A stretch of DNA of 64,000 nt, from positions 4,154,001 through 4,218,000 of the forward strand of contig OU015569.1 in the NCBI GenBank assembly GCA_907165135.1, given 5' to 3'. The translations under genes were made by a program, and so were the position numbers. How positions within the stretch are numbered: position 1 is the stretch's first letter; each line of letters begins with the position of its first letter. The DNA comes from Oikopleura dioica. Lineage: Eukaryota > Animalia > Chordata. The notes under the pieces were generated by a model that saw nothing but the letters and a program-made list of their open reading frames with translations, was not told where the DNA came from and searched no databases. Below, piece by piece: positions 22,751-31,759 of the stretch.

Positions 22751-25700
22751 TTAGTAAACCTCGACTGAAAAATATTGATTCGATGAAGAAATGGCTAATC
22801 GGTGAGCTTACCAGAAGCGTACTCGTAGCTCTCGTCATCACTGGCGTTATCGTCGATAACGCAGAATGCGGCAGCTACGGAGCGAGCGCTAAAAAACACG
22901 ATTCGCTTGAGTCGTTTGTTGAAAAAGAAGAATTGAAAGGACCAAATCGTGGGCTTTTCCAAAACAATTATATTTTCGAAGTGATAGATGCTTTACCTCT
23001 TCTTCTGGCGACGAATCAGGGTTGTAAGAGTAGATCTCGCATTCTTGAGGAACGATTTCTGCCTCGATCGATGCCCAAAGCTACAAAATACATCAAAATA
23101 TTATTGGGATCTTAGATTCGTTAGACTCCCTCGTCCCCTAAGGTCACTTGCTTATCTAGATCGAGCTTTGCTCGGTCGCCGCCGTGTATTTCTCTTCATT
23201 CGGTAATTCACGCAGTTCGTGAATTAACCTCTATTTTACTCCAGCTCGAAATACAGACGTCAAAGATACTTTACTCGTTTTCTTCACTCGTCCAGATATA
23301 GAGAGCAGGCAAACTACGCTAGAAGTGGGAGATTCAGCAGAAGCTAGGATCCCTTCAGTGGTATCAGAGTAGTCCCGTTGGAGAAAAGATAAATTTTTCC
23401 GCCATCGACAACCGAAGTTTCGCAACTTGGACGCTGATTGGCCGTCAGCGGAGTCGAGGGGAACCGAATCACCAACCGCCACCGCGCCGCCGGAGAAACT
23501 CCACTCAGAGAATTTTCCGCACCACACCAACACCACCCCGAGCGAGCGCCACCGCACGAGCGCCACCACGACCCACGCGCCGAAAGTCGCGCCCACGCAA
23601 CCACGCACGCACGCCGGGGAAAACCTAAAATACTGAGAAAAACATAATTCTTTCGCCACTTTTCACCAAAAATCGAGAGAAGTTTACGAAGAATCGACCC
23701 TTGGACCAGACCTTGAAATTTCGACAATCGCTGGACAGAGAAATCGTCGGGCGTTTGCGCAAAAGGCACCTCAGCTCATCATATTGCGACTTTTAGTCGC
23801 AGTATTTTCTGAGGGCCTGAAAGGTAATCCAAGGCCCATAAACCCTTACTGCCGATATATTTCGAGCTATGGCGGCGAACAAATCACTGCTAGAAACCGT
23901 CACCGAAATAAGAAGCATAAACGATCGAGTAAACTACCTCGAAGAACAAGTGCGAAATGACGAATCACTAAAGCCAAGCCTAGAGCCCTTGATCACAGAA
24001 AGCAGAGTAAAATTAGAACAGCTCAGTACAACGCTTCTTACCTGCGAGCTCGATCAAGGAAAAGACTCTACGAATGCGACAATGAGAGAAGAAGCATGGG
24101 TGGCCACTACCTGGTCTCGTCACGTCCAAGACTTGCCGAAGCTGGACGCCGCATGCAACACATCTTTCAACACCTTCTTGGGCAGAGCCGACATTTATCA
24201 CCGCGCCTACGTCCGCGACAGACCTTCACGTGAACAGCCTTTCATCGCAGCAGTGTACAGCCACTTCGACTTGAACATCGAACGCTCACTTGGAACCGAA
24301 TTTCTGAATTGTCAAGACTGGAAATCGGCCAAGGCGCTGCTAGAGAAATCATTCGCCGCGAAGAGTCACTACTTACTGAAGCTAAGCGAAGTTTTCGACG
24401 TCGAATACGACCATTCGAAGCCGTTTGCACACTACACCGCCAACGTCTTGCAAAAGATGAACGAGGCGAAGCAAGCGACTTTGAACTCTTACCGACAAGA
24501 GAAGTCAGCCGACGCCGGGGTCGATGAAATATTTGACATATTCTCGACGATGATGCTGTACTTGAATCTTAGGAAAGAAGAACCAGACGTTTTCAACGCA
24601 ATCCTTCCAAGCCTATCAAAAGTTTACGATATCAACGAACTCTGCCGTCTCGCCCAATCCACAAGACAGAATCGAGTTGACAGCGCGACCGTCTCCCAGC
24701 ACTTCAACAGAAATAAGAACAAAAAGAAGAAGAATGCTAAGCGCGCCAGCAACGATTCTAAGGATGGGAAAGACGATAAACAACCAGAATCCAAGAAGAT
24801 AAATACGACTAAGAACGTTGAAGATTTCCAACCATTCGACGTTCACTTTTACACAGTGAAGAAGAAGCGACCAGGAAAGGCTTATTTCGCTTCGGCTACC
24901 ATCATTACGGGCTCTAAAAGTTTTGACGTATCGATGGAAGTCGACAGCGGAGCCGAGTCCTCCTGTCTGTCCGCTGCTTACGTTCCCGACGAATTTCTCC
25001 AGATGCTGAAGCCCTGTCCCTTCAAGGTCACCGGTTTCAGCCCAAATATTCCCGCCGAGCAGCCGATGGGTATCCTTCCCTGCCGCTTATCATTCAATGG
25101 TGGCCCTGCATCCTCCCTGAATCTCACCATTATGCCAGGCAGTAAATACCCAAGTCTACTGGGCCGCGATATACTAGAGAATGCGATGACGGACAGCTTC
25201 ACAGTCGACAATAAGAATCGTACTCTCTCATTTTGCTACAACGAAGCCTTCACACAAACTGAGACTCAAGTGGTGAAGCTGGACGGAGTGAAGCGGACCA
25301 AAATCAAGAAATACTTGACTACTAGATCAGCGGTCAAGGATAGCGATCGATCCCGCACTCAACCGCCACCAAAAGTCCCAAAGCTGGACGCACCTAACAA
25401 GAACGCAGCCAGGTGCCCCATTCAGCTAGCGAAGCAAAAACTCGGAATTACCCTACCAGCAAACGCCGACCCGGGGCAAAAGAAGGTGGTCGCCGAGCTG
25501 TGTTTGGATTTCGACGACAGATTCGGCTGCGACGGTCAAAAAATGGGTGAATTCCCATTCGAGATCGAAATCCCGACTGATGGTACGAGTCGAAACATCA
25601 GTCAACACCCTATTCCGCAAGCTTTTCATGGCCAGGTCACTGATCACATCTCCGAACTGCTCGATACGAAAATAATAGAAGAGATCAAGGACCAGAAAGG

Positions 25701-28700
25701 GTTTAATAGCCCCGTTCTGCCAATCCCTAAGAAATCTGGGGAAATGCGCTTCTGCATCAACTACAAGAACAGCTTGAACAAATGCCTCTCCGACAAATCC
25801 GACCCATATCATCTTCCGAGCATGGAGGATACGATCGCGAACATTGGACCGGGCAACAAGTATTTCGCCACAGTTGATTTGCGGAGCGGATATTGGCAGT
25901 GCCCTATTAAGAAAAGCGATAGGTATAAGACTTCCTTCCAGTGGGGTGGGAAATCTTACGCCTTCTGCAGATTACCTTTCGGTTATCGATGCTCGGGGAA
26001 TATATTCTCGCGCGTCGTAAACACGATTCTCGACTCAAGCCCCACCAGGAAGAAGATGCTTTCTTATATCGATGACATAGTATGTTTTGGGAAGTCTTTC
26101 AGCTGCTATTACAACACTCTCCGAAACCTATTCATCGCGCTCCGCAAGTTTAACGCTAAACTCAAGGGCGAAAAGTGCTCTTTCCTACAATCAGAAGCTC
26201 ACTTTTGGGCCGAATCATCAACGAAGAAGGAATCAAACCGGACCCTGCGCAAGTCTCCGCCCTTCGTCAGATGAAACCCCCACGCTCCCAAAAGGAGTTA
26301 GCTTCATTAATCGGGTCATTGAATTGGATCCGAGGTTTTCTAGAAACAAAAATGGGCGAAGCTATTTCATCCGGTTGCTTCTCGAGCAGAATGAAACCCA
26401 TAAACGATGTTCGAAATTCGGCGAACGAAACAAATTGTTTCAAGTGGACCAAAGAAGCGGATTTGGCGCTCAAGGAAATTCAACGACGACTCTCCGAGAC
26501 TCCTGTCATAAGCTTTCCTAACTTTGACGAGTCTTTTCACCTCTACACAGACGCGAGCCTGTACGCAGCGGGTGGTGTTCTGCTACAAGAGTATGGCGGG
26601 AGAGTGCACCTAGTAAGCGCGATTTCCCACACCTTCAACAAAGCTGAAAGAAAATGGAACACTTCAGAAAAGGAAATGTTTAGCATTGTCTGGTGCTGCG
26701 AGCGACTGGAAAAGCTCCTGAAAGGTAGATTCTTTCAGATTCACACAGACCACAGATCTTTGATCTTCCTACACAAAAAGAAGTTCAAGAATTCTAAAAT
26801 AAGCCGATGGCAAAGCCGATTGGAAGAATTCGATTTTCACATTGTCTACATCAAGGGATCAGAAAATCAATTCGCCGATTTTATGAGCCGCAGACCTGGC
26901 GAGGACGACAAATCACTTGGATACGACTCTGAGTTTCCCGTTGGTCGCGAGTACGAAATCGACAAGAATTCACCAGTACGTGTCTTCGTCCCTTTCTGGA
27001 ACGAAAATCAGTTTCCGGAGAAAATCACTTTATCAGAGGTGAAGATACATAAGGTAAACGTCAAGGCTATCGCGGCGCCAATGGAGATTCCGTTGGTGTC
27101 AGCGAATTATAATAACATTCTGGACTATCAAAGGGAGGACTCTGCTCTGAGTGCAATCATCACTTTTCTGGAATCTGGTAAGGAGCCACTGGACATAAAA
27201 TCGCTGGTGAAGGACTCCGACCACCGACAATCGTCTCTACTCAAGATGGAAAAAGCTCTGTTCCTGGATAACACTACCGGGTGCTTGATGTGTCAATTCA
27301 AATCTGGCGCGCGGGCGGTGGTACCGGAAGCGGTAAAAAGTCACTTTCTCTTTCTAGCTCACGACTTGTCCGGTCATCTGGGCGAGCCGCGGACTTTAGA
27401 GCGATTAGAGGACGTTTGGTGGCCTTCATTTCAAGACGATGTTTCTAACTACGTCCACAGCTGCGTCCCTTGCCTACGCAGAAAAGGATCTGCTGGAACT
27501 CGTACCAAACCGCCACTTGGAACCCTTCGTCGTGGAAAAACAGCTGGCGAATCGATTCAGATCGATTTCGCTTGTATGCCTCCCGCTGGCGGATTCAAGT
27601 ATTATTTGGTGGTGGCGGACACTTTCTCTCGCTACACTTGGTGCATTCCGACGCGGTCCGACACTGCTATCCGCGCTGCAAAAGCGCTCATCTACAAGGT
27701 CTTCCTTCCCATGGATTTCTTGCCGAAACATCTACACAGTGACAGAGGTACCCACTTCTGCGCAAGCGTGATTGACGAAATGTGTAAGCTTAACCAGATA
27801 AAACATACAATAAGTACCGCATTTCACCCTCAATCAAACGCTTTCGCAGAAAGAGCGAATCGGACTATCAAAAACAGTCTATTCTGCATGGTCAACTCAT
27901 CTTCCGGTCGAAAAACTTGGGCCGACTGCGTTCCCCACGTGATGCGCGCGCTCAATAGTGTGAAAAACAAAAGCACGAAAATTTCACCGCGAGAAGTTTG
28001 GTTTGGCCGAAAAAGTACTTTCACCCACTCTACTGGCGCAGAAATGACAGCGGAAACACCTCAGGTGTTTGGTCTCAATGTGGGAGCTTTAGCGAAATCG
28101 GCGGAAGCCATTGTGAAAACTGCGATGGAAGCTGCTGACCGAGCCATGGAGCACAGGCTGAAAAACGAGCCTAAGCCGAGACCAATCCCCGCTGGCGCTG
28201 TCGTGTACATTAAGCGAGAAAACCTGACCGACGCTAAAAGCAAGAAGGAACGCTGGGTAGGTCCCCTGAAAGCCGTTTCGAGCAACGACTGGGTCGTCAT
28301 GGTCGAAGATAAAAAAGGACAACGTGATTTCATCCATCGAGAACACGTGGTTCACGCCGCAGAACGAAATCACGACTTACGCTGGATTGATTACTACGAG
28401 GCCGAGTACGTATTCCCACATTTAACCGAAATCGTTAAGTCGAAAGTCCCACAAAAATCGCCTGTTCCTACTTCCAAACCGATGGAAAAGTCCGGGTCGA
28501 AGTCGCATGGGGGGAGGAAATCTTCTCAGGTCGCGTCGACTCCGATGGTTGCTATGGAAAAACCGCCAAGATCATCTCTATCACCTATTTTGGAAAGTAG
28601 ACGCCGATTGGACATGGAAAATCTGGGAGATACAACCGCTACATCTATTTTGGACTCGTCGGTAGCTCCAGCCGAGCCGTCAGATCGCTGGTACTCTGGT

Positions 28701-30170
28701 GGTACTCTTTATGAAACTGCCGAGGACATGTCAGCTGATGCTACAGTGATTTCGGAGGTTGCTGCGCCCGACAATAGCCATATGTCAGTCGATAAACATA
28801 ATTCAACAGTAGTTGAGGGCTCAGCAACTGAAAACAGCAAGAAAAGAACCCGTCCAAAGTCTTCACCAGATCGTCAATACTCAGCCGGCGCCGATCCGAA
28901 TGCGACTTTAACCGAAGTTGGAGCAGCTCATCTCCCGAAACATACAAAACGAGCACACCGTGAAACGAGGCCCGTCGAACCTCTAAACATCGGCACAAAC
29001 TCGGGTCAGTCATACGACTAAGCGCAAGTACTGCCCCACTCAGGTCCCCTATTCATCGACCGGGGCCTGAAAAGGTACGGAAATTATCACAGTTTACCGT
29101 CGCCGACGTATTTTGAGTTCTTCTACATGTGCAGCTACTCCTTCATGTCATCACCGCTCGGACATCACGAAAACTTCGCATCTGATTCAAGCTTTTTCCC
29201 AAAAAAGGGTTTTTTAACGCGAATCAGACTGCCTCGACGTTTCGAACCTGCCATGTTACTCATCTTACGCTTATACTCCTGCAAAAATCACACACTTTGG
29301 CCTTAGAGGACGTTTCAGTCTCATGGGGGGTATTGGGATCTTAGATTCGTTAGACTCCCTCGTCCCCTAAGGTCACTTGCTTATCTAGATCGAGCTTTGC
29401 TCGGTCGCCGCCGTGTATTTCTCTTCATTCGGTAATTCACGCAGTTCGTGAATTAACCTCTATTTTACTCCAGCTCGAAATACAGACGTCAAAGATACTT
29501 TACTCGTTTTCTTCACTCGTCCAGATATAGAGAGCAGGCAAACTACGCTAGAAGTGGGAGATTCAGCAGAAGCTAGGATCCCTTCAATATATAAAAAAAG
29601 ACGTGGATTTACCTGCTGTCGAACGTGGCTATTGAATTTAGAGGAAAGTGCTGCAGTAAGAGTCGAATCGATGAAATTCTTGACCCAGAAGAAGTTGGGC
29701 TCGACCGCGAAGTCATCCGCTTCAGTAGTGGAAAAGTCGTAGTCGAGACCGTAGGAATGATTGAGAGTCGATTTTAGATACCAGAGTGTCTTTCGTGAAG
29801 TGGCGCCGACCATTTGCACACCATCGTTGGAACTAGAAAGGGTTTAGAACGATTCAGAAGGTCGAGTTCCTTTTACCTTTGACTCCAAGTTCGGACGCGA
29901 GAAGGCGGAGTCACTGCGCCTGTGCACGGCGGGCTAAGTGCAGTCAGCTCTTGTGGATCTACGCCTTTTTTGTGTATGCTTCGTCCAAACTGTTTTTTGT
30001 CCTCGGACGTCAGTTTGCAGCTATCAGAAATGATGAAAACGCCTTACTATCAAAGTGTACCTGTAGCTTTCCAGTCGTGCATCAATTCTCGATCCATCGA
30101 GACAATCTTCTTCGAAAACGCTGAGTATGGACGATAAAGTATCGAAATTGTGGTTTTCTAAGAACTTCAT
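22751..30170 (-). CDS. MAF1: Repressor of RNA polymerase III transcription MAF1; 6 exons, intron 3 contains the LTR element
   Basis: Spliced product: MKFLEN...[16 protein letters not shown]...[24 protein letters not shown]...EPNFFWV...QQ|[22 protein letters not shown]...[26 protein letters not shown] introns at 30021-30060, 29833-29876, 23081-29612, 22954-22996 and 22765-22811 all keep the frame. Confidence 0.93.
23102..23357 (+). repeat. 5' LTR
   Basis: TATTGGGATC...GGATCCCTTCA; matches 29331-29586 with no difference seen by eye. Confidence 0.97.
23359..23370 (+). promoter_or_regulatory. Primer binding site (initiator tRNA-Met type)
   Basis: TGGTATCAGAGT, separated from the 5' LTR end by 1 nt. 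Confidence 0.9.
23869..26274 (+). CDS. Gag-protease-RT (N-terminal part) polyprotein
   Basis: Aspartic protease [10 protein letters not shown] motifs [22 protein letters not shown] and YIDD. The pol frame is left at about 26206. Confidence 0.95.
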   Translation: MAANKSLLETVTEIRSINDRVNYLEEQVRNDESLKPSLEPLITESRVKLEQLSTTLLTCELDQGKDSTNATMREEAWVATTWSRHVQDLPKLDAACNTSFNTFLGRADIYHRAYVRDRPSREQPFIAAVYSHFDLNIERSLGTEFLNCQDWKSAKALLEKSFAAKSHYLLKLSEVFDVEYDHSKPFAHYTANVLQKMNEAKQATLNSYRQEKSADAGVDEIFDIFSTMMLYLNLRKEEPDVFNAILPSLSKVYDINELCRLAQSTRQNRVDSATVSQHFNRNKNKKKKNAKRASNDSKDGKDDKQPESKKINTTKNVEDFQPFDVHFYTVKKKRPGKAYFASATIITGSKSFDVSMEVDSGAESSCLSAAYVPDEFLQMLKPCPFKVTGFSPNIPAEQPMGILPCRLSFNGGPASSLNLTIMPGSKYPSLLGRDILENAMTDSFTVDNKNRTLSFCYNEAFTQTETQVVKLDGVKRTKIKKYLTTRSAVKDSDRSRTQPPPKVPKLDAPNKNAARCPIQLAKQKLGITLPANADPGQKKVVAELCLDFDDRFGCDGQKMGEFPFEIEIPTDGTSRNISQHPIPQAFHGQVTDHISELLDTKIIEEIKDQKGFNSPVLPIPKKSGEMRFCINYKNSLNKCLSDKSDPYHLPSMEDTIANIGPGNKYFATVDLRSGYWQCPIKKSDRYKTSFQWGGKSYAFCRLPFGYRCSGNIFSRVVNTILDSSPTRKKMLSYIDDIVCFGKSFSCYYNTLRNLFIALRKFNAKLKGEKCSFLQSEAHFWAESSTKKESNRTLRKSPPFVR
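26175..29021 (+). CDS. RT thumb-RNase H-integrase (pol continuation after a 1-nt frame break)
   Basis: LGRII...KPDP. RNase H motifs YTDAS, EKE, TDHRSL and ADFMSR. Integrase HHCC (AHDLSGHLG...CVPC), D,D35E ([20 protein letters not shown]) and WVGP. Confidence 0.95.
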   Translation: MLFPTIRSSLLGRIINEEGIKPDPAQVSALRQMKPPRSQKELASLIGSLNWIRGFLETKMGEAISSGCFSSRMKPINDVRNSANETNCFKWTKEADLALKEIQRRLSETPVISFPNFDESFHLYTDASLYAAGGVLLQEYGGRVHLVSAISHTFNKAERKWNTSEKEMFSIVWCCERLEKLLKGRFFQIHTDHRSLIFLHKKKFKNSKISRWQSRLEEFDFHIVYIKGSENQFADFMSRRPGEDDKSLGYDSEFPVGREYEIDKNSPVRVFVPFWNENQFPEKITLSEVKIHKVNVKAIAAPMEIPLVSANYNNILDYQREDSALSAIITFLESGKEPLDIKSLVKDSDHRQSSLLKMEKALFLDNTTGCLMCQFKSGARAVVPEAVKSHFLFLAHDLSGHLGEPRTLERLEDVWWPSFQDDVSNYVHSCVPCLRRKGSAGTRTKPPLGTLRRGKTAGESIQIDFACMPPAGGFKYYLVVADTFSRYTWCIPTRSDTAIRAAKALIYKVFLPMDFLPKHLHSDRGTHFCASVIDEMCKLNQIKHTISTAFHPQSNAFAERANRTIKNSLFCMVNSSSGRKTWADCVPHVMRALNSVKNKSTKISPREVWFGRKSTFTHSTGAEMTAETPQVFGLNVGALAKSAEAIVKTAMEAADRAMEHRLKNEPKPRPIPAGAVVYIKRENLTDAKSKKERWVGPLKAVSSNDWVVMVEDKKGQRDFIHREHVVHAAERNHDLRWIDYYEAEYVFPHLTEIVKSKVPQKSPVPTSKPMEKSGSKSHGGRKSSQVASTPMVAMEKPPRSSLSPILESRRRLDMENLGDTTATSILDSSVAPAEPSDRWYSGGTLYETAEDMSADATVISEVAAPDNSHMSVDKHNSTVVEGSATENSKKRTRPKSSPDRQYSAGADPNATLTEVGAAHLPKHTKRAHRETRPVEPLNIGTNSGQSYD
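29322..29330 (+). promoter_or_regulatory. Polypurine tract (short G-run)
   Basis: CATGGGGGG directly abuts the 3' LTR start at 29331. Confidence 0.75.
29331..29586 (+). repeat. 3' LTR
   Basis: 256-bp direct repeat of 23102-23357. Confidence 0.97.
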
Positions 30171-30432
30171 GTTTTCGTATAATTTTGATGGATGTAACGA
30201 GACGCTGTGTAGAGAATTTTTAGTGCGCGCTTTCTGCTGAATCGATAAAAAATTATACAAGGTCGTGTCTGCGCGCGGGGTCAAATCAATCTGAATTCAA
30301 TTTCGCCTGAAAAAGAGAAAAAACAAAATTTCTAGGGACCATTCTAGAACAGATCTTATTCAATGTGATCAATTGAATTTTCGCTCAGGGGGACAGTTTC
30401 TTTTTTTTTTTGCTTCTCACTCGTGTATGTTT

Positions 30433-31759
30433 TTAAAACATCTCTCCGATGCCCATATCAGATTCTTCGATATCCATCGCTTCGACTCTCTTCGATTTTT
30501 TCATGAGCTCTTTCATCTCACCATCTTCTAACCAGGCCCATCTGAAAAATATTATTAAGATTAAATAGTGCCAAGGTCGTTTAGGAATTATCATGTCATC
30601 AATTATTTGCCAAAACGCCCTGTGTAAACTCCCTTTTACTGGCTTGTTTTTCAGATTGATTAAGTTAGTTTGAGAGGAAATAAAATTTAATTTTAATTTA
30701 AATTTTGTAAATTAATTCGAAGGGAGTCACGAAAAATAAGATTGAGATTGTAATTATGGCGACGCGGCTTTTATTAAACCTCTTTCAAGAACCTGATTGA
30801 GGCCTATACAAAGGTTGCCAAGCCCTAGTGATAGGATATCAAATGCTTAAATAAAAAGTACCTTTGATCGTCTCCTTCGACGACAATAGAATTGAACGTT
30901 CTTTTGTCCCACGATGAAACGGCATTCACGTCGGATACTTCTCCGGTCTCTTTGTTCCACACTTTCGTTAGCTTGACGTTGAAGCTTGTGATTGCACAAC
31001 CTAGAAAAGTCTTAATACAAAAAGTTCCGTAATAAACGAACCAAAAAGTTTGAGGAGACGAGACTGCATCGCAGTGATAGGCTCTCCGTCCTTCGCGAGG
31101 AAGAAATCCTTCATCAATGTTACAACTCCGTCTTTAAGCATCGTGGGCAGCTTGAGTCGTTCACGAAGGTGCGACTCGATCGCAAATGAAAACTGGGGCA
31201 ATGGCCCAGCAAGAACCTGGGTATTTTTTAGAAAATAGAGTTGTTGATTATTGCGTACCTTGACAGTTACTTCTGAAGTTTCTCCAGCTCTAGCAAAGGA
31301 TGCAGAGTTGTACTTGTTAAAGTACTCGACGACTTCTTCTTCTTTTTTATTGGTAAAGAGCAGTCCAGTTTCCCCGACTGAAATATTCATCACTTTTATC
31401 AAAGTTAAAATTGCTTACCTAAGCTCTGAGAGAACTTGTGAAGGCCTTCTGCGGTTTCAAGCTCTTTTGACTTTCCAAAGGCGACTTGGCAAAGTTTATT
31501 TTTGCCTTGGTAAAATCGAGAGTCATCTTTGAATTCAGTGCGCAACTCCTTCAAGTGATTGTTGCGAGTGTTCTCCAGCGAATAAATGAATATTCTCTCG
31601 TAACTGTTGACGAAGTCTTGGATCTGTGACACAATCTGAACATCGCCATTGGAACACAATTGACTTGATAAGGCACAATACCTTTTCTTTGTGCTCAAGG
31701 CCGACTTGCTTCTTCGTCTGGGTGAGAGAATAGGTCTTATCTCGTCGCGATTTCGGCAT
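30433..31759 (-). CDS. MRTO4: mRNA turnover protein 4 / 60S biogenesis factor; last exon tentative
   Basis: MPKSRRDK, FYQGKNKLCQVAFG, GETGLLFTN, FARAG, GPLPQFSFAIESHLRERLKLPTMLKDGVVTL and EPITAMQSRLLKLFG. Confidence 0.92.

Follow-up and report, generated by a model that had tools for sequence, protein, structure and literature searches.

A young LTR retrotransposon in a 43-nt intron of the X-linked MAF1 gene of Oikopleura dioica: an insertion polymorphism of the Okinawa lineage

The MAF1 gene and its third intron

The window analysed here (64,000 nt; contig OU015569.1, positions 4,154,001 to 4,218,000) lies within the X-specific region (XSR) of the O. dioica OKI2018_I69 assembly, a location that agrees with the name of the annotated MAF1 product described below. 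The MAF1 gene is encoded on the minus strand and is split as follows (coordinates here and throughout are those of the window):

30061..30170, minus strand, MAF1 exon 1, coding part; ATG at 30170-30168; the peptide aligns with residues 8-36 of P0004 and equals the start of P0126
29877..30020, minus strand, MAF1 exon 2; bordered by GT-AG introns of 40 and 44 nt; aligns in order on P0004
29613..29832, minus strand, MAF1 exon 3; Pfam Maf1 match of 54.7 bits, profile positions 59-117; P0004 residues 87-159; ends in CAGCAG
23081..29612, minus strand, MAF1 intron 3; 6532 nt, GTAAAT...TTGTAG
22997..23080, minus strand, MAF1 exon 4; starts with CTTTGG; Pfam Maf1 profile positions 122-145; P0004 residues 160-187
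22812..22953, minus strand, MAF1 exon 5; Pfam Maf1 profile positions 154-174; aligns on P0004
22751..22764, minus strand, MAF1 exon 6, coding part including the TAA stop; the ending ...VEVY matches P0126 and P0004

The GT-AG introns of the gene measure, in order, 40, 44, 6532, 43 and 47 nt. Exons 3 and 4 meet in phase 0, and translation of both exons reads HVRQQ|LWASIEAEI across the boundary. The Pfam search was run exon by exon, with the exons unjoined; the matches to Maf1 (PF09174) are nevertheless collinear over exons 3, 4 and 5, and the score of exon 3 stands against a cut-off of 28.9 bits. A protein search started from exon 3 alone retrieved P0004, a spliced environmental homologue on which exon 4 aligns directly after exon 3 (residue 159 being followed by residue 160), and a second search, started from P0004, retrieved P0126. 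The latter is CAG5096030.1 (Oidioi.mRNA.OKI2018_I69.XSR.g14447.t1), a protein of 237 aa that bears the name MAF1 in UniRef and to which animal MAF1 proteins are 40-45% identical. Its sequence equals the MAF1 exon peptides in order; thus, the public annotation already joins exons 3 and 4 over the 6.5-kb intron. Maf1 is single-copy in the genome, as judged from a search of the assembly (64,281,565 bases in 19 contigs). From its membership of the family, the protein is assumed to be a repressor of RNA polymerase III.

The junction between exons 3 and 4 is also seen in transcript-derived relatives, in which the intron is short. The peptide HVRQQ|LWAS is common to 13 cluster relatives, at 90-95% identity, most of which come from short transcript-type contigs, and the alignment of the cDNA contig of a relative (L044) to the window falls into two blocks, the sole break being at 29613 / about 23080. 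Moreover, the relative P0003 has a read-through of 25 codons at the position of intron 3, which indicates that the relatives have a short intron at this place.

Two minor observations concern the surroundings of the gene and its homologues. A gene that lies upstream of MAF1 on the same strand has its stop some 265 nt short of the MAF1 ATG (window 30171-30440), and an acceptor-like tttttcag is found between the two genes, which may form an operon with trans-splicing. Among the homologues, a JGI environmental contig of 2646 nt (L021) carries two MAF1 ORFs, of 237 and 241 aa, placed head to head on opposite strands; it is apparently a chimeric or fold-back transcript assembly.

Anatomy of the element in intron 3

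Nearly the whole of intron 3 is taken up by a retrotransposon of 6485 bp, which is on the plus strand and hence antisense to MAF1:

23098..23101, no strand, target-site duplication ATAT, copy 1; perfect 4-bp duplication
23102..23357, plus strand, 5' LTR; 256 nt, TATTGG...CCTTCA
23359..23376, plus strand, primer-binding-site-like sequence, TGGTATCAGAG..., one base past the 5' LTR
23869..26274, plus strand, ORF1, 801 aa; gag-like N-terminus, weak aspartyl-protease match, RVT_1 (E 2.7e-21)
26175..29021, plus strand, ORF2, 948 aa, in a different frame from ORF1; RT_RNaseH, Integrase_H2C2 and rve in order
29325..29330, plus strand, G-run GGGGGG, polypurine-tract-like (the reverse complement of CCCCCC), directly before the 3' LTR
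29331..29586, plus strand, 3' LTR; 256 nt, 100% identical to the 5' LTR
29587..29590, no strand, target-site duplication ATAT, copy 2; a single ATAT is present in the empty-site contigs described below

The plus-strand orientation follows from the primer-site-like sequence after the left LTR, from the G-run before the right LTR and from the two ORFs, both of which are on that strand. The LTRs have the termini TA...CA, unlike the usual (not obligatory) TG...CA; their boundaries are nonetheless fixed, because perfect duplications surround all 41 copies of the family (see below). ORF1 has two matches, RVP and gag-asp_proteas, at aa 353-438; both are weak, and both are upstream of the reverse transcriptase. 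The order of the pol domains, that is, protease, reverse transcriptase, RNase H and integrase, is that of Ty3/gypsy elements, which makes the element one of the Tor type in this host. After the integrase core, ORF2 continues in the pol frame for a further 397 residues, a hydrophilic C-terminal part to which no family was matched. An env-like third ORF was not found, the element having no other long ORF than the two listed. As for the priming tRNA, a pattern search of the genome gave matches at chance level, and no tRNA was found within the window.

The pol frame changes between the reverse transcriptase and the RNase H, a trait that is not common to all copies in an alignment of 19. The interruption may be an assembly artefact, since single-base run-length errors occur nearby in the assembly (30317).

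At position 30317, about 150 nt upstream of the MAF1 start codon, all three DNA runs considered below, the source run included, have one A more than the assembly in a homopolymer run; single-base frame breaks in assembled repeats are thus suspect.

Read along MAF1, intron 3 is made up of 22 nt of original sequence, ATAT, the element, the other ATAT and 17 nt of original sequence, so that removing the element together with one ATAT leaves a GT-AG intron of 43 nt (6532 - 6485 - 4). With the ATAT copies counted, the element begins 26 nt from the donor and ends 21 nt from the acceptor, and neither splice site is touched. The last 17 nt contain the T-rich tract and the acceptor, intact, and a candidate branch site, TTGAT, 12 nt from the acceptor, is still on the acceptor side. 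The initial annotation had described a 6485-bp element with identical LTRs, an ATAT duplication and a 43-nt remainder, and its coordinates and arithmetic are all borne out; the minus-strand splice boundaries that it proposed (CAGCAG|GTAAAT and TTGTAG|CTTTGG), with the phase-0 frame QQ|LWASIEAEI, are likewise confirmed. Its distance of about 20 nt between the antisense element and each splice site agrees with the 26 and 21 nt measured here, and its assignment of the gene to MAF1 holds, as the reconstructed protein is the annotated CAG5096030.1 and P0004 aligns with it exon by exon.

A young family with an A/T target preference

Searches of the genome for the LTR and for its junction with the primer site revealed at least 41 full-length copies of the family (L001-L018 and L022-L043; for example, C5:5989306-5995786 and C4:3013873-3020354). 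A perfect 4-bp target duplication is present in 41 of the 41 copies, and the two LTRs are identical in 39 of them, the exceptions being one copy with a single mismatch and one with a shortened 5' LTR. When 18 copies were aligned with the MAF1 element, the nearest was separated from it by 2 substitutions and by 3 length differences of one base over the 6485 nt; the others had as many as 84 substitutions, whose arrangement in blocks resembles exchange between two subfamilies. Because its LTRs are identical and its nearest copy is only 2 substitutions apart in 6.5 kb, the MAF1 element is, on this sequence evidence, judged to be very young; the family is currently or very recently active.

The integration sites of the family share a base composition. 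Three bases outside the duplication an A or a T is found at one end in 36 of 40 copies and at the other end in 39 of 40, and the flanks of these 40 copies are mirror-symmetric, T-rich upstream and A-rich downstream, a pattern to which the MAF1 site conforms. With such a preference for A/T, the A/T-rich micro-introns of this genome are natural targets.

Two further candidate regularities were considered and rejected. Targeting of splice sites was suggested by duplications that end in AG or start with CT (12 of 40; p = 0.003), but the bias is weak and depends on the batch (10 in the first 19 copies, 2 in the next 21 that could be scored), and a palindromic A/T preference was favoured for this reason. 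An enrichment of the family on the X, where the X-specific region held 9 of the first 19 copies, disappeared after wider sampling (10 of 41).

Other features of the family deserve mention in their own right. Between about 25320 and 26580, the 19-copy alignment contains shared blocks of differences that occur in two states and have differing break points, which fit template switching or recombination between two subfamilies. The family as a whole is too young for dating by LTR divergence. Two copies, L014 (C2:863328-867615; 4288 nt) and L041 (on C5; an element of 5049 nt), have large internal deletions; despite these their LTRs are identical and their duplications perfect, so that deleted copies have seemingly been mobilised too.

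The empty site and the segregation of the insertion

Contigs of three DNA runs, X1 (the source run), X2 (another sample of the same study) and X5 (a sample of another study), were placed on 27901-30500, that is, on the exon 3 side of the element. The X1 contig (5239 nt, depth 101) covers 30500 down to 29560; it thus crosses ATAT and enters the LTR for 27 nt, with no mismatch. It ends where the sequence is no longer unique, the 27 letters of LTR being fewer than the 31 set as the threshold for bridging. Among the X1 contigs placed on 27901-30500 there is no empty-site end, and X1 contains all sampled words of 29540-30200, those specific to the junction included. The other two runs yield the empty site. 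A contig of 3025 nt from X2 joins window positions 23067-23096 directly to 29586 onward, with a single ATAT, and a contig of 12674 nt from X5 joins 23074-23101 to 29594 onward, with the neighbouring A-run shorter by one A. The flank depths of these empty-site contigs, 39.6 in X2 and 63.4 in X5, equal the depths of the neighbouring contigs; X2 and X5 thus carry the precise empty site, with no sign of the insertion.

It is this exact empty site in two other DNA runs that shows the element to be a genuine insertion: the intron already existed and was short before the element arrived, and no new intron was made. The MAF1 insertion is a segregating polymorphism within the Okinawa lineage, two samples of the same lineage being empty. 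The suggestion of the initial annotation that the insertion was very recent is in line with the identical LTRs and the nearly identical copy elsewhere in the genome, and its guess of a polymorphic allele proved right with the X2 and X5 contigs. What is new here is the exact empty site in two DNA runs, and hence the polymorphism, together with the size of the family; polymorphic young Tor insertions (PMC4402516), and the joining of exons 3 and 4 in the public annotation, were already known.

The OKI2018_I69 assembly was made from one male, and its XSR, of 12.9591 Mbp, has a Nanopore depth of 140 as against about 250 on the autosomes (PMC8008620). The location of the window within the XSR and the sex of the sequenced animal together mean that MAF1 is X-linked and that the insertion allele was the only MAF1 copy of this male.

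The three runs also differ in the depth of the element. Word depth in the element (27901-29586) exceeds that in the unique flank (29641-30500) about 35-fold in X1, about 85-fold in X2 and about 2-fold in X5, which may point to a line-specific burst of this family, although such depths are not copy numbers.

Origin of the giant intron and its likely consequences

Very probably, a young Tor (Ty3/gypsy-type) element integrated in antisense orientation into the 43-nt intron 3 of MAF1, in the X-specific region, where the insertion is segregating. Integration in the A/T-rich middle of the intron duplicated ATAT; the donor and the first 22 nt were left on one side, and the T-rich tract and the acceptor, within the last 17 nt, on the other. 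The sequenced male carried the insertion as his only allele, and the empty one is found in two further samples of his lineage. An assembly error that misplaced the element, the real locus having a 43-nt intron, could be invoked because the assembly comes from Nanopore reads whose median length is 840 bp (PMC8008620), because it retains an error at 30317 and because the element is multi-copy. We regard this as very unlikely: the X1 flank contig passes through ATAT into the LTR without a mismatch and X1 shows no empty-site end, all sampled words of 29540-30200 are contained in X1, and the ATAT duplication is perfect, as are those of the 40 other copies, which a collapsed or misjoined repeat would not create. 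The chances are poorer still for an old, fixed long intron that holds a mere transposon remnant. Nothing speaks for it except that some long introns exist in the species (PMC4122922); it is refuted by the exact empty site in two other samples, and the identical LTRs and the short intron of the relatives (the 25-codon read-through of P0003) also stand against it.

An alternative of greater weight, which we hold possible, concerns the effect of the insertion: the allele may be a loss-of-function or strongly hypomorphic MAF1 allele, whose carriers would survive because the gene is dispensable in culture. Two routes would lead to this state. By one of them, short-range pairing would join the exon 3 donor to an acceptor-like site that lies 65 to 70 nt further on, within the antisense LTR, where the following site is predicted:

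29548..29549, minus strand, candidate cryptic acceptor AG, tctcccacttctAG, in the antisense LTR, 65 nt past the exon 3 donor; a prediction only

The pyrimidine fraction of this predicted acceptor, 0.79, is as high as that of the best real MAF1 acceptor, its distance of 65 nt from the donor is inside the intron-length range preferred by the species, and its use would bring the reading frame to a stop after 15 codons (within 16). The antisense LTR also contains GTGACC, with a candidate donor-like GT, 67 nt before the intron's own acceptor. By the other route, transcription of the element out of its 3' LTR would make antisense RNA; this right-hand LTR could drive transcripts antisense to MAF1 exons 1-3. 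A deleterious allele would also agree with the rarity at which Tor insertions are kept (PMC4402516), and no MAF1 transcript of the Okinawa type was found in the two sources searched: of the reads of RNA run X24, 0 fell on MAF1 and 6, which were 95-99% alike, at the end of the stretch covered, and none of the transcript-derived proteins in our collection is identical to Okinawa MAF1. An exact look-up of P0126 likewise gave no match, possibly because the collection leaves out records from the genome of the window. The lack of MAF1 reads in X24, however, is equally explained if the run comes from another lineage, as the mere 95-99% likeness of its six reads suggests it may. Against the loss of function also stand the intact original splice sites and the MAF1-sense strand of the element, which has no canonical poly(A) signal AATAAA and a single ATTAAA. 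In addition, antisense orientation is usually the least harmful one for an intronic element.

We lean, though not strongly, towards an insertion allele most of whose transcripts still lose the 6.5-kb intron at its original sites, if somewhat less efficiently. In favour of correct splicing, both sites and the T-tract on the acceptor side are intact, and the hemizygous male reached maturity. In other organisms, however, MAF1 is not essential and its loss is tolerated, so that a viable male does not prove splicing. PMC4122922, citing Denoeud 2010, puts about 2.4% of Oikopleura introns above 1 kb, and on this figure the Oikopleura spliceosome already handles long introns. The initial annotation, which proposed that a 150-fold longer intron may be mis-spliced or may force exon definition where introns are defined by a short donor-acceptor distance, thus starts from a premise that is weaker than stated. 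That most transcripts are mis-spliced, which would make the allele a MAF1 hypomorph or null, is conceivable and less likely than correct removal. We think it rather unlikely that the allele is mostly mis-spliced, for example by way of the acceptor-like site of the LTR, and that carrier males deprived of their only Pol III repressor develop normally. Were the allele indeed mostly mis-spliced, it would be a ready-made, X-linked and naturally segregating MAF1 knock-down in a chordate, and would demonstrate directly that sites are paired over short distances by the spliceosome of Oikopleura.

In any event, the locus offers a clean pair of alleles, in which the same single-copy X-linked gene has either a 43-nt or a 6532-nt intron with its splice sites untouched. 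Male carriers express one MAF1 allele only, which opens the splicing of a giant intron in a micro-intron genome to testing, and pre-tRNA levels are a functional readout of the MAF1 allele.

Comparison with known systems

Henriet et al. (2015; PMC4402516) described Tor insertions that some individuals carry and others lack, with LTRs that are nearly identical and duplications of 4-5 bp. In the Bergen line these insertions were hemizygous, were found in < 5% of the animals and were never homozygous, which was read as turnover under strong purifying selection (PMC4402516). At MAF1 this phenomenon recurs in the Okinawa lineage, as an ordinary insertion polymorphism: the element resembles Tor in its host species complex, in the Ty3/gypsy order of pol, in the 4-bp duplication, in the near identity of the LTRs and in being polymorphic. 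There are also differences. In the env-bearing Tor3 and Tor4, pol is followed by a third, env-like ORF ahead of the 3' LTR; the MAF1 element has no such ORF. Small numbers per individual were reported from Bergen, whereas a single haploid assembly contains 41 or more full-length copies of the family to which the MAF1 element belongs. Homozygous insertions were absent from the Bergen study, and the MAF1 copy is hemizygous by being X-linked in a male. Moreover, the MAF1 site, in contrast to the Bergen cases, is a micro-intron of a conserved single-copy gene.

Intronic insertional alleles due to IAP and ETn elements disturb splicing or polyadenylation in mammals, the mouse being the case in point. 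As at MAF1, a young LTR element then resides in an intron of a functional gene and offers cryptic splice signals. Mammalian hosts, however, normally have long introns and exon definition, whereas the MAF1 host intron had 43 nt and grew 150-fold; and the mouse alleles come with effects on transcripts, whereas the MAF1 insertion is known here from DNA. New introns derived from transposons are represented by introners and by the MITE-derived non-canonical introns of the larvacean Fritillaria. There, as in the MAF1 case, the spliceosome has to remove a mobile element, and in Fritillaria it likewise does so in a larvacean. Those introns are new, however, whereas the GT-AG intron of MAF1 keeps its own ends and has only been lengthened by the element.
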